Part shown: piece by piece, positions 28,301 through 109,549 of the stretch
Numbering within the stretch: the first letter of the stretch is position 1
Layout of the letters: the number at the start of each line of letters is the position of its first letter
NCBI GenBank assembly: GCA_951406725.2
Contig: OX597821.1
Location: 102,320,001-102,444,000 of the forward strand
Direction of reading: 5' to 3'
DNA: 124,000 nt
DNA from: Octopus vulgaris
Lineage: Eukaryota
Program-made: the position numbers and the translations under genes
The notes under the pieces: generated by a model
Seen by the model: only the letters and a program-made list of their open reading frames with translations
What the model was told of the DNA's origin: nothing
Databases searched by the model: none

Positions 28301-28549
28301 GGAATTTGAACTCAGAATGTAAAGAGCCGGAAGAAATGATACTAAATATTTTTGTACGAAGTGCTAACGATCCTGCCACCCTGTTACCTTGAATTTGAGA
28401 TGGTATTAAACGTTGGCGGTTTTTCGAACTTTGTACATATATGTTGGAGGAAACTGAAATATAAACAGGATAGTCAAGATCGGTCATTCTTGTGATTCTT
28501 AAACGGTTCATCATTTGTTTGTAATATTTGAACGGTGACAAGTCTAAAC

Positions 28550-28781
28550 AAATGCCATTCACATTTGACGGATATTTGTCCTCCTCTTTGTTGTTAACAC
28601 AACGTTTCGGCTGATATACCCTCCAGCCTTTATCAGGTGTCTTGGGGAAATTTCGAGCCTGGGTTCTCATTCCTATGTTGTTGTTGTTATTATTATTATT
28701 ATTATTCAGGTCACTGTCTGGAATCGAACTCGGAATCTTGGGGTTAGTAGCCCGTGCTCTTAATCACTACGCCATATGCCC
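28550..28781 (-). mobile_element. tRNA-headed SINE carrying a hammerhead-like motif
   Basis: Head GGGCATATGGCGTAGTGATT..CGGG CTACTAA CCC..GAGTTCGATTCC has A and B boxes and tRNA-like arms. It is followed by an (AAT)n(AAC)n linker and then the hammerhead at 28641-28596. Confidence 0.7.
28596..28641 (-). ncRNA. Type I hammerhead-ribozyme-like motif (core G8 mutated in this copy)
   Basis: GACAC-CTGATAA-A-GGCTG(gagggtatat)CAGCC-GAAA-CG-TT-GTGTT: stem I, stem II and a minimal palindromic stem III. Confidence 0.7.
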
Positions 28782-31608
28782 GGGAATATGGGCGTAGTGC
28801 TTAAGAGCGCGGGCTATTAACCCCAAGATTCCAGGTAGTGATCTGAATAATAATAATAACAACAACATACCTTAGGAATGAGAACCTCGTCCCCTCAAAA
28901 TTGCAGGCCTTGATAATAATTAGCATTATCTACTGTTATTATAAAAGAGGCAAACTGGTAGAATCATTAGATTGGTAGAAAATGCCTTGCGGTATTTGTT
29001 CCGACTCATTACATTCGGAGTTCAAATCTAATCGAGGGTGTCTTTGTAACGCTCGTGCATGTCTAAAAGTGTCAAGGGGAAGGTTCAAAAACAAAAAAAA
29101 ACAAAAAACGTGACAGTGTGAATGAAGAAATATGTCAAATATGTGACTATTATTTGTCTTTACTCTAGCCAGCACCAATCGTTTCATCTTGCCTTATTTG
29201 CGCTGCAAGTAAAAACTACAACTGAAATCCTGTTTAAAAAAAGGTGGACGTCTTACGCCAGTCTGGCTTTCTAAGTTGATGATGTCCGTCGTCTCTATAC
29301 ATTCAACATATTCCAACGTCATTCATGCTACAAGATCTACCTTCTCACATGTCAATTTGCCGCAGTCGTCACGTAACGGTTATAAAGCCAGGTTGAAAAG
29401 CGAGGAAAGTAAAGCTCGCTGAACAAAACTAAACCACACTCCCCACACATCACACGCAAATATGAACTTAGGCAACAAAAATAGATAAGTTGTCAATCTT
29501 TTTTGCCAAACCAGAAGAGTCCTTATAGTTAGTGTTTACTAACTGTTTTTATATTTTAGTCATTAACCCATAAAGTGCTAGGATTTGCACTTACATAGCA
29601 TGAACTGCTGAGCACATTTTATGAAAATGAGACTACCATGCACACATAAAAAATATTTAAAAAATAGTCAAAATATCTTCTTAGTATAAAATGGTGGCAA
29701 GTTTTACATCATCTGAAAAGTCATTAGTTGAACTATTTAGTCCTCTTGCATTCTGGGGGGTATCGGAGTGTTTGAATGACATTAGACCCCAACAAACGCC
29801 CATAACTTAAATGCACCTATCTGGGCCACAATTGTGCCCTGTTGACCCGTGCCTAACGGCCACCATCGTGGCCCGTCGCGCTTTATGTGTTAAGCTACTG
29901 CGAAATAAAATCTTAACCGGGATAAAAAGCTGGTAACAGTGACCATCTGTACGGTTCGGTTTGCTAGAAGCAACAGCCAAATCTACTCCAAATCAGATAT
30001 CTTCTTTCTATTCAAAAAAAAAAAGAAGACAACAATGAAGTTGCAATAATCAGGACGAGGAGTGGGAGATAGATACTATGAAGACGAGATTTTGTCTCCA
30101 AATGCTGGTCTTAGTCATTGGACAGCGGCCATGCTGGGACATCGCATTGAAGGGTTCAGTTGAATAAATCGATCACAGTACTTATTTTCCGAAGTCTGGT
30201 ACTTATTCTATCGCTGTTTTGTCTAAACGCTAAATTGGGACATAAATAAACCAACACTGGTTGTCAAGCAGCGGAGAGGGACAAACACAAAGACACACAC
30301 GCGTTACATACGATGAGTTTCCATACAGTTTCCGTCGACCGGGGACTCTAATAGATGACTCTTGTCCAAGGTGCTAATCATGTCTGCTAGATCAAGGCTG
30401 CGCTGGAGCTGAACAACAACAGTATCTTAGACAGCTGTCTTAGTATTATTATAAGCCCCAGGGAAAATCAGTGCACTGGGTCCTATAGTATTTATTGACA
30501 GCATTATGTATACATTACATACACAGACATATGTAAATGTATACATATCTATCTATCCATCCACACACAAACGCGATGAGCTTTCACAGTTTCCGTTAAA
30601 TTCGCTCACAAGACATTGGTCGGCCCGGGACTGTAGAAGACATTTGCCTAAAATGCCAAGGAGTGGGAACGAACGCGAAACCACGTGGTTGCAAAGCGAA
30701 TTTCTTAATCACACAGCCATGCCCACGCCTATATCTGAACTACACATGTAAATAAACATGAGCCGGTCACAGCTGGAGTACTTTTGATCGTAGGTATGCG
30801 CGATCAAGATGACACGGAGATTAAAAAAATATAAAAAAACGACCACCTCCACCTGCTGCTATTGTATCGTACACACACACAGACACTCAGCAGCAAAAAA
30901 CAAACAAAACTGAATTCATAGACGGAGAGAGAGAGCACTTGGCTGGTGATAAATTTATGTATCAAATACCGCAACTGGTGGACTTCGACACCTCAGCGTT
31001 TATAGTTCCGTTGAAATTTATGAAGTTTTAGGCCTTTCTTAGATAGACTGTAAGTACTTGAATGTTATCACAAGTAGGTATGATAATAGCCCGTTACTGT
31101 TCTGTTCTGTATAGATTCAAGTCGACCTCTGACACTTCAGATGACCCCCAAACTCAGAAAGGGAAGGAAGAGGGGGAGAGAGAGAGAGGTAGGTATGAAA
31201 GAGGGAGATGGAAGGAGGGACAGAGAGGGGTATAGAGGAAATATTCTAACTCTTCACTTTCAGAATTTTTCTCACTCTGAGATGAAATAGGAAACAGTTA
31301 TTGGGCATAGAGAATCAATGACTCACAGACGCCAGCCATTTCCCCCTGATTTCTTTTTTTCAACCACCAGAACAACTTAGGACTTATGAAAGGAATGCTT
31401 CATTTACTCAGAACGTATGAAAATAGTTGGGAATAAAAAAACAACAACAACAAAAGAGAATGAGGGGTAAGTCAGTGTTAGCTTATTTAATGCAGGGATC
31501 ATTAAAAATAGCTAACTATAAATAAACATGCGGCGAAGAAAAAAAAACCCTCAAAAAAGAAAAACAAACCGATATTCTATATCGGTTAATGAGTAATAAT
31601 CTCTTTTT

Positions 31609-107225: not shown

Positions 107226-109549
107226 TGTAATTTTCATTCTATGACCAAAAATGAAAAACAATTCCAAACAAATTGTTTATTACTGCAATATATAAGTTTG
107301 TGCTTTTATCTCTGAAAGACATTTAGGTCAACAAGTATTCTTTTACCGTTATGTCAGTTTTGAAGATATTAATTCATTGTTGTTATATGGCAGTATATTG
107401 AGTTCAGCTTTATTATTATTACATCCTGCTGTTTGTTTCATAGCAGCATGGAACATGGACATTAAATATTGATGATGATGGTGTATATTTCCACTGCATT
107501 ACTTCTCTAGTTCACTAAAATATGTTCCAATACATCTGTCAACTGGCTTGGCTTGTTAGTTATAACAACAACATTTTCACAAATCACATCCTATCATCTT
107601 GAAACAAGAAGGTCACATTGGATGCTGTAGTCTTAGATGTTCAAAGAAGAAAGGATGGAAGATCTTTGATCAATTTGTCCTGTCTATTCAATCAGGTTTG
107701 ATTTGGGTGCTAAACAATAATAATAACAACAGAAGCATCTAAGCATACAGAGGTTCAAAGGAAATTAAATGAACTAATAATATCAACCAGCAGACACTTT
107801 GCAGTTCAATCATTATCGTGTGGATAGAATGTATGTCTGCATAAATCTTCATGGGTCTAGAGACCTGACATTTCTGCTTTGATGTTAAAAGCGTAGATTA
107901 AAACTAAACAAACTAAATGGCGAGAAAGTTGAAATTGAACCAAGAGCACTTGTCTAATTGAAACTGTATTGGCATTAACAGTAAAAAAACAAAAACAACA
108001 AAAAACAAAACAATAGCTGTTGGTGTTACTGATGATACATATTAATGATAATGAGTTTGTCTTTTACGAAACAGCAATTGTGTAGCTTTATTCCTACAGT
108101 AGGCTTCTGTTAAATTTATGTTAGATATATTGTGTTTTATATAGATTACTTACATTCATATGATTCATTCATCATCATTGTTAATTGTCTGTTTTCTATG
108201 CTGGCATGAGTTGGATTGTTCAACTGAGCTAGAGGGCTGTGCTGAGCTCCAATATCTTTTGGCATGTCTCTATGCTTGGATGCTCTTCCTAATGCTAAAC
108301 TGCCTTACGGTGTGTCCTGGGCTCTCTTTTCTCAAGGCATCAGCACTGGCAAGGTCACCAAGTAACTTGCAAGACAAGACCCCTTAAGTGAAAGGGGTGT
108401 AGTCTTGAGGGAGGTGGTTTATGCCAAGTGTTGATTGAGGAATAGGAACAGGTGCCCTGCTGTAGAGGCAATATATGGCTGCCCCTGCTGGAGTTGGGTG
108501 TATAAGTTTCTGAGAGTGTGAAAGGAAAGTGACAGATGGTTAGAGATGGGGATAGAGGTGGATACATTGGCAGAGGCATGGTTTATGGTAAATATCAGTT
108601 GCTGGGGGAAATGAAGGAAATATTAGTGGGTCAGAGAGGAGAAGGAGATGATAAGTGACTGTAGTATGGGGGAAGACTTATCAGGACCCATCTTTATTGA
108701 AATTTATGGGTCTTCTCAAGTGCAGCATATTGCCAATCACCTTGGTAATTTGTCATTTCCTTGTTGAGGCTCAACATCTTGAGGTTGGTCTTTGTGACTT
108801 GGTGCCACATCTTCCTGGGTTTCCCTCTTCCACAAATTCATGCTGATTGTTTGCAGTAAATTGTGTGTGTGTTTGTATACATACATTTTGGAGTACAAAC
108901 ATAAGGAAACATACTCTGTTAGTTTTTTTTTTTTAAGCTGAATGATTCACTCTGTTGCTCCATAGAGTTACTTGCTGGTATTTGGTCATTAGGCAATAAA
109001 TAGCACAGAATGTATTTGTAAATAACAATTCAAGGGTGTAAATTAGTGAATCTTTTCAGATTAATTGAACCCTGTACCTTGTGCTAACTGACCAATACAC
109101 CACAAGACCATCTCTACCACAAGGCTCCACTACAGGTGTTTTATCTGTTGGAACTTCCTTATGTAGACTTAAATAGATTAAACACTGTCTAACATAGCAA
109201 AGTAGTCCATCTTGATCAATATATGAATGAGAAATGACTCCAAGGAAAATTAATAAATCAATAATTAATATTGTTACATTTTTGTCACACATACATGCAT
109301 GACACTGAAAGACAAAATGGAATAAGCAGAACAAGAGGAGACTTGTGGGATAGAAAGTCACTGAAGAGGTCACAGAATGTGTGATGAAAGAATTTTGACA
109401 AAGAAACTATAATAATAATAGTAAAGCTGAAGTGATGACCAAATATATTGTGTGTGTGTCTAATTGACAAAAGATGACCAATCAACACATGATTTCATGG
109501 CAAGAATCTTGCAAAATAAATACATATCTTGCAAAATAAATACATAAAC

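Follow-up and report, generated by a model that had tools for sequence, protein, structure and literature searches.

A short repeat at positions 28550–28886 of a 124,000-nt stretch of the Octopus vulgaris genome (assembly GCA_951406725.2, contig OX597821.1, 102,320,001 to 102,444,000; hereafter the window) joins a tRNA-derived head to a minimal hammerhead motif. Judged by its sequence, this repeat is the 3′ untranslated region (UTR) of a Penelope-like element (PLE) and not merely PLE-like, a relationship newly found here. The PLE 3′-terminal module, with its tRNA-derived head, has probably spread as a short interspersed element (SINE) that RNA polymerase III (Pol III) drives and that was born in the 3′ UTR of its partner. 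This interpretation starts from direct observation of the anatomy of the unit, the genome-wide linkage of its parts, its counts, its attachment to a PLE frame and the architecture of its insertions.

The element in the window is a 225-nt unit on the minus strand, running from 28781 to 28557 and composed of a head, a linker, a hammerhead body and a short A/T-rich end. Its 5′ and 3′ limits were set from an alignment of 30 copies including flanks, and the 40 scored genome matches and flank alignments described below identify it (28557..28781, minus strand) as a full-length copy of the 3′ module of a PLE family. The tRNA-derived head, 73 nt long (28709..28781, minus strand), is a candidate internal Pol III promoter on the basis of its sequence and of genome counts. 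Sequence and alignment place its A box, TGGCGTAGTGA, from head position +8 (28764..28774, minus strand), the family majority having G as the last base. The B box, GAGTTCGATTCC, covers head positions 51–62 (+51/52; 28720..28731, minus strand). The boxes are accordingly placed as TGGCGTAGTGG at +8 and AGTTCGATTCC at +52. Next comes an internal microsatellite at 28677..28706 (minus strand), the (AAT)n(AAC)n linker, which was likewise recognized from sequence and alignment. Most copies have (AAT)n and then ATCGAAAAATACCTT, with no (AAC)n; the (AAC)n linker in place of ATCGAAAAATACCTT marks a minority subfamily, represented by the window copy (28677-28706) and by loci L003 and L016. An earlier reading of the window from its letters alone, the sequence-only reading, had listed these parts on the minus strand: a head bearing an A box and a B box, the (AAT)n(AAC)n linker and a hammerhead of type I. 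All of them are present.

A genome search with 28550-28781 returned at least 4,416 candidates, and all 40 scored matches were 87–91% identical to the query over its positions 1–225. Because every scored match spans both head and hammerhead, their linkage is a property of the family and extends beyond this one locus. Complete pattern counts over the genome, whose controls gave 0, describe its abundance. A 35-mer of the head occurs 7,875 times at up to three mismatches, hence there are at least 7,875 heads; a 35-mer across the junction on the side of the PLE open reading frame (ORF) occurs 1,439 times under the same tolerance. Attachment to the PLE frame is therefore seen in 18% of heads (1,439/7,875), and in about 82% the copy begins precisely with the head's first base. 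Exact patterns and a sample of 29 loci agree with this picture. An exact 25-mer of the head is found 1,427 times, the exact head with the junction hexamer upstream 171 times (171 of about 1,500), and 4 of the 29 loci are PLE-attached, the other 25 beginning at the head and so having a discrete 5′ end. An exact 25-mer of the hammerhead is more frequent than that of the head, by about 2.7 to 1 (3,921 matches).

The partner was found through a common sequence upstream of the head in the 4 PLE-attached copies of the sample. When 222 nt from upstream of one head served as the query, at least 2,527 candidates were returned, and in all 20 fetched loci, which include the query's own locus and two near-identical duplicates, the head follows the same ORF end at the same junction. 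The upstream frame ends in LRKDRKILDL and a stop codon about 30 nt before the head, and holds a VYSIxCSCGRLYKGET...EHRKAV block. The stop codon is followed, after about 190 nt, by the hammerhead motif, which is on the sense strand. A piece of the upstream ORF matched the Pfam reverse transcriptase (RT) model RVT_1 (E 1.2e-9; 38.6 bits versus a cut-off of 29.6), and the ORF shares 31–41% identity with the RT of another PLE of this genome, the Pfam-positive GIY-YIG element of 781 amino acids. The C-terminal core block aligned with the GIY-YIG core of that PLE (BLASTP E 0.005; hhalign probability 56%, E 1e-4), and in the Atlas the C-terminal domain lies beside eukaryotic GIY-YIG clusters with a score of 0.96; its motif likewise supports the endonuclease assignment. 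The whole short element is the partner's 3′ UTR, and the 3′ end is common to both. The sequence-only reading had guessed at a Penelope link, which is firmer than it supposed: the entire unit forms the 3′ UTR of a PLE with an RT followed by a GIY-YIG-like domain. This partner family is old. It comprises at least 4,923 candidates, the scored copies being 73–100% identical at the protein level and most of them containing stops, and PLE copies are 5′-truncated at many different points.

The abundant 781-amino-acid PLE family was itself considered as a partner and rejected. No similarity was found between the repeat and the 3′ flanks of 30 GIY-YIG loci, which were picked by Pfam GIY-YIG and are mostly of this family. 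The family occurs genome-wide (for example at L037 and L042) and has many uninterrupted 781-amino-acid frames with identical Pfam GIY-YIG scores, for which reasons it is probably young. Its ends sit in (TA)n/(TATG)n microsatellites.

Insertions of the repeat have the architecture of PLE insertions. In 19 of the 29 loci an inverted partner copy adjoins the head, and the points at which its own 5′ side is truncated vary. Neighbor pairs closer than 6 kb, taken from the first 100 hammerhead sites listed, comprised six divergent, one convergent and no tandem pair, where an arithmetic estimate of the chance expectation is below one. About 40% of copies carry an extra 35-nt tail at the 3′ end. This tail pairs with upstream AAGATGAGGA to give a 10-bp terminal hairpin, whose loop contains the AATGTAAAT repeats. 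PLE insertions have been described as having an inverted, 5′-truncated copy adjacent upstream and one end extended by a 30–40-nt tail (Craig et al. 2021, PMC8557442). The architecture is thus a PLE signature, and through the inverted partner and the 35-nt tail the Penelope link extends to the insertions themselves.

The window locus follows this pattern. The sequence-only reading had treated 28550-28886 as a single element; 28782-28886 is instead a separate, partial copy on the plus strand. This inverted partner (28782..28886) comprises a head, a linker and the body's first 14 nt, and its head carries a 12-nt deletion of the B box. It adjoins the minus-strand copy head to head with zero spacer, giving inverted repeats at 28732-28773/28791-28832 (93%), 28685-28725/28827-28867 (88%) and 28662-28675/28873-28886 (100%). 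The 3′ region of the minus-strand copy (28557..28595) holds the 5′ arm of the family 3′ hairpin, and in it the AATGTAAAT-type end begins. The arm reads AAGAGGAGGA at 28588-28579, the family form being AAGATGAGGA; the 3′ arm belongs to the optional 35-nt tail and is absent from the window copy, which has no tail. The window insertion is a single, old and dead head-to-head pair of the PLE 3′-terminal module.

Two side observations concern repeats near such insertions. Inverted copies of another, far commoner tRNA-derived SINE containing GAGTTCAAAT flank the window locus at 28304-28337 and 28994-29027; a further copy lies at L012:1900-1971, and in the contigs this SINE is covered about ten times as deeply as the present family. 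At L069, the segments 373-1000 and 1281-1946 (oriented coordinates) belong to a local 908-nt tandem duplication of a PLE end and its flank. This duplication, which takes in the flanks, is not a pseudo-long terminal repeat.

In about four-fifths of heads the end falls on a single nucleotide located seven bases ahead of the A box, which points to an RNA with a discrete 5′ end. Pol III initiation is the simplest source of such an end. In the mechanism we propose, the internal A and B boxes would let Pol III start at the head and read through the linker, the hammerhead and the 3′ hairpin, stopping in the flank. The resulting short RNA would have the 3′ end of the PLE and so could be copied and inserted by the PLE enzyme, which is the most likely spreader of the repeat. 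Insertion by this enzyme would leave the inverted, 5′-truncated partner upstream. The hammerhead would be inherited from the PLE 3′ UTR, and its palindromic ACGU helix III may permit the predicted cut, between GUU and G, only as a dimer.

The hammerhead of the window copy (28596..28641, minus strand) was assigned to the minimal type I kind of PLEs from its sequence, a descriptor, the alignment and comparison with published motifs (PMC4209133). Helix I pairs GACAC (28641-28637) with GUGUU (28600-28596) and is open-ended, as in type I. The core, CUGAUAA, occupies 28636-28630 and is followed by an extra unpaired A at 28629. Helix II, GGCUGG/UCAGCC, spans 28628-28609 and is closed by G10.1–C11.1. 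It is followed by GAAA (28608-28605) and then by C-G, U16.1 and U17, with the predicted cleavage site between 28601 and 28600. The helix III region thereby reads GAAA-CG-U-U and then G, with an A15.1–U16.1 pair, a base other than G at position 17 and palindromic 15.2/16.2 (ACGU). The core of the window copy is broken. It has A at position 8 (28631) opposite an unchanged C3, a change that should kill its predicted ribozyme. The sequence-only reading had noted this G8>A and asked whether the family core is CTGATGA; the majority of aligned copies does have CUGAUGA, and the window copy is a decay product. A descriptor of this architecture was run on the window and on shuffled 124-kb windows. With a strict core it gave no match in the real window and 0.05 per shuffled window. 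Relaxed, it has a chance rate of 0.3 matches per 124 kb, and the weak hammerhead-like match that it alone reports at window position 109361 (plus strand) is at that chance level.

Among 52 ungapped copies outside the window, 36 keep all ten invariant bases of the core (C3 U4 G5 A6 N7 G8 A9 and G12 A13 A14), and 17 combine an intact core with both helices, A15.1–U16.1 and a base other than G at 17. The unpaired A between A9 and G10.1 is invariant (52/52). Helix pairing is seen in 95% of cells, versus 18–52% with the partners slid, and both helices are present in the minimum-free-energy fold. Losses cluster at two CpGs, C11.1–G12 and C15.2–G16.2, and the pattern looks like ordinary decay. Cervera and de la Peña (2014; PMC4209133) argued that PLE minimal hammerheads are real from consensus families, the base between A9 and G10.1, the G10.1–C11.1 pair and the palindromic 15.2/16.2. 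By every sequence feature tested, the octopus motif is of this minimal type.

Several points weigh against the SINE interpretation. Pol III transcription, mobilization in trans and any cleavage are the parts of it that we infer. Of the claim that the head is tRNA-derived, the motifs and their spacing stand and the fold does not: ARAGORN called no tRNA at the window locus and none in 55 heads, and no Rfam tRNA match was found, even on 286 nt at E ≤ 10. Many SINE heads are similarly degenerate. That the element has no internal TTTT Pol III terminator is not significant (P = 0.47 against shuffles). At a polymorphic site, A is found in 315 of 1,427 heads overall (22%) versus 40 A and 127 G among PLE-attached heads (24%), and this equal ratio means that a separate SINE lineage is not demonstrated. 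An apparent diagnostic A/G difference between short and attached copies was a sampling bias and vanished in these whole-genome counts. For the partner, Pfam and PDB searches put no name on the endonuclease domain. Stem covariation, which the sequence-only reading had proposed as a check, did not appear within the family, with no double change in 53 copies and no advantage over shuffles. The copies are young decay products whose pairs hardly vary, so this outcome is expected either way. Cleavage itself would split the head from the 3′ end and is not obviously of use to a SINE. Moreover, PLE minimal hammerheads cleave poorly in vitro (PMC4209133).

These last points lead to the best-supported rival explanation, in which the hammerhead is carried along as a passenger or serves structurally in the 3′ recognition region, undergoes no self-cleavage in vivo, and owes its conservation to recent common origin. 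We regard this as a real possibility, though the less probable account. It agrees with the missing covariation, with copies that decay neutrally and mainly at CpGs, and with published PLE minimal hammerheads, whose in vitro activity is low and whose role has been called unclear. Contigs from four runs of three organisms, whose status as RNA is a guess, were matched to an intact-tail copy at 85% likeness and bear on both sides. The family is present in thousands of contigs, its body several times deeper than its head. Across the three organisms the rest of the body is as uniform as the hammerhead region, which is therefore conserved no better than its surroundings. However, variation of 10% or more at a core position is confined to the free N7 of one organism. 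The founder sequence also meets every defining hammerhead position and has PLE-specific traits that were not searched for. Furthermore, three unrelated-looking PLE-linked motifs of this genome keep the fold, including a U3–A8 core covariation. The predicted fold is common to these three types and their helix sequences differ, which is the sole covariation-like support for the motif. Comparison with hammerhead models had been proposed in the sequence-only reading; at E ≤ 10 no Rfam hammerhead model matched the window, any of three copies with an intact core, or the 286 nt alone; a helix III of a single A–U pair around a two-base CG loop may explain this miss.

The two other PLE-linked motifs of the genome were observed as follows. 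A second hammerhead type was detected with the relaxed descriptor at L038, L040, L041, L044 and L049, on the sense strand, 400–900 nt past the endonuclease domain. It has the core UUGAUAA (U3–A8), a GGUUC/GAACC helix II and a palindromic ACAUGU helix III; U3–A8 core covariation has been reported for schistosome PLEs. These loci match the 781-amino-acid family over the ORF and differ from it in the 3′ region. In the 3′ regions of the 781-amino-acid family itself, the strict descriptor found no hammerhead. At L039:90-574, a 485-nt foldback with arms 95.7% identical is built from a third short element with a hammerhead, present twice in head-to-head orientation, and sits in a (TA)n tract beside the 3′ end of a PLE of the 781-amino-acid family.

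A further explanation dispenses with a separate SINE. Either a cut in the tRNA-like part of the PLE transcript, by RNase P for instance, would release a 3′ piece that is then retrotransposed, or reverse transcription would regularly end or switch template there. The short element is wholly contained in the PLE 3′ UTR, PLE copies are 5′-truncated at many positions, and short and attached copies are alike at the single polymorphic site tested (22% versus 24% A), all as this explanation would have it. We nevertheless consider it unlikely. Random truncation does not give the one nucleotide at which about 82% of heads end. RNase P is a less likely source of this end than Pol III because the head is without acceptor-stem pairing and no tool calls it a tRNA, making it a poor substrate. 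A structure that blocked reverse transcription would be expected to do so at its 3′ side and not at its 5′ edge. The A and B boxes, finally, lie at canonical positions.

The sequence-only reading had called the repeat a candidate SINE–retrozyme hybrid. A metazoan retrozyme would be transcribed from tandem units, cut at successive hammerheads and circularized. Metazoan non-LTR (long terminal repeat) retrozymes are known as head-to-tail tandem repeats with circular RNAs (PMC7229834; bioRxiv 10.64898/2026.07.22.740005), and the second of these sources, a 2026 preprint, derives them from PLE terminal repeats. Like the octopus family, retrozymes are non-coding, have a type I hammerhead, with the weak palindromic helix III seen in animal retrozymes, and are thought to derive from and depend on PLEs. 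In contrast, the first 100 listed hammerhead sites include no same-strand, head-to-tail neighbors within 6 kb versus six divergent pairs, and the copies are dispersed singles or inverted pairs. No well-supported back-joint spanning a unit was found in the contigs of the four runs, and no tRNA head has been described for retrozymes. Since no tandem arrays were seen among these sites, the octopus family is not a retrozyme, and we give that origin very little credence. The sequence-only interpretation as a whole therefore holds for the linkage, the core and Penelope, fails for the retrozyme label and finds no support in stem covariation. That the motif is a chance match, as the broken core of the window copy and the missing Rfam match might suggest, is refuted by the descriptor rate of only 0.05 per shuffled 124 kb, by the intact core of the family majority and by its location in a PLE 3′ UTR, a known site of such motifs.

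The SINE interpretation sets the family beside several known systems. The PLE minimal hammerheads of PMC4209133 are likewise type I, with a 5-bp helix I, a 6-bp helix II closed by G10.1–C11.1, an unpaired base between A9 and G10.1 and palindromic 15.2/16.2 (ACGU). They also lie on the sense strand downstream of the RT–endonuclease ORF and occur as thousands of dispersed motifs, often in close opposite-strand pairs. The octopus motif differs in that a tRNA-derived head bearing both boxes, A and B, precedes it in the same 3′ UTR, and most copies begin exactly at that head. In PMC4209133 the dispersed motifs were taken as probably truncated PLEs, and no tRNA-like part was mentioned. Another precedent is provided by the schistosome SINE-like repeats Sm-alpha and Sj-alpha (Ferbeyre et al. 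1998, cited in PMC7761336 and PMC4209133). Sm-alpha, like the octopus repeat, is a short non-coding repeat joining a Pol III-type promoter region to a type I hammerhead. Its hammerhead is reportedly canonical with loop–loop contacts and is said to cleave well, the repeats being partly in tandem. In the octopus, by comparison, the hammerhead is minimal, the copies lie scattered or as inverted pairs, and the common 3′ UTR directly identifies the autonomous partner.

In SINEs of the eel UnaSINE1/UnaL2 type the 5′ end is discrete, the tRNA-related head contains A and B boxes, and the 3′ end, terminal hairpin included, is common to the partner. The octopus family has all of these: the head with its boxes, the discrete 5′ end and the partner-common 3′ end with its hairpin. 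However, its partner is a PLE and not a long interspersed element (LINE), the partner's 3′ UTR holds the whole SINE including the head, and the insertions have PLE-type inverted partners and are not simple copies flanked by target-site duplications. The eel pair is one example of tRNA-derived SINEs with a LINE-common 3′ tail, as cited in PMC10886601. Literature searches, with Repbase and Dfam outside their scope, turned up neither a hammerhead SINE in octopus nor a PLE whose 3′ UTR is tRNA-like.

A stronger form of the SINE interpretation appears to us only slightly short of evenly balanced. The PLE would have its own tRNA-derived Pol III promoter in the 3′ UTR, about 30 nt past the stop codon, and each copy could fire a short RNA with the hammerhead and the 3′ recognition end. 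The family would then be a SINE caught at birth and still attached to its parent, the first SINE–partner pair of a PLE, and a natural cassette of tRNA promoter plus hammerhead.

Dispersed minimal hammerheads number thousands in animal genomes and have been ascribed to truncated PLEs. The octopus family offers a case that can be counted, with the same module of about 250 nt attached to a PLE frame and, about four times more often, alone from a Pol III-type head. If the Pol III transcripts do not exist, these copies would be ordinary truncated PLE ends with an unusual tRNA-like insert. If they do, PLEs would support SINEs, as LINEs do, and the origin of a SINE would be visible inside its partner's 3′ UTR. 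A short, abundant RNA would then also provide a handle on PLE hammerhead cutting in vivo.

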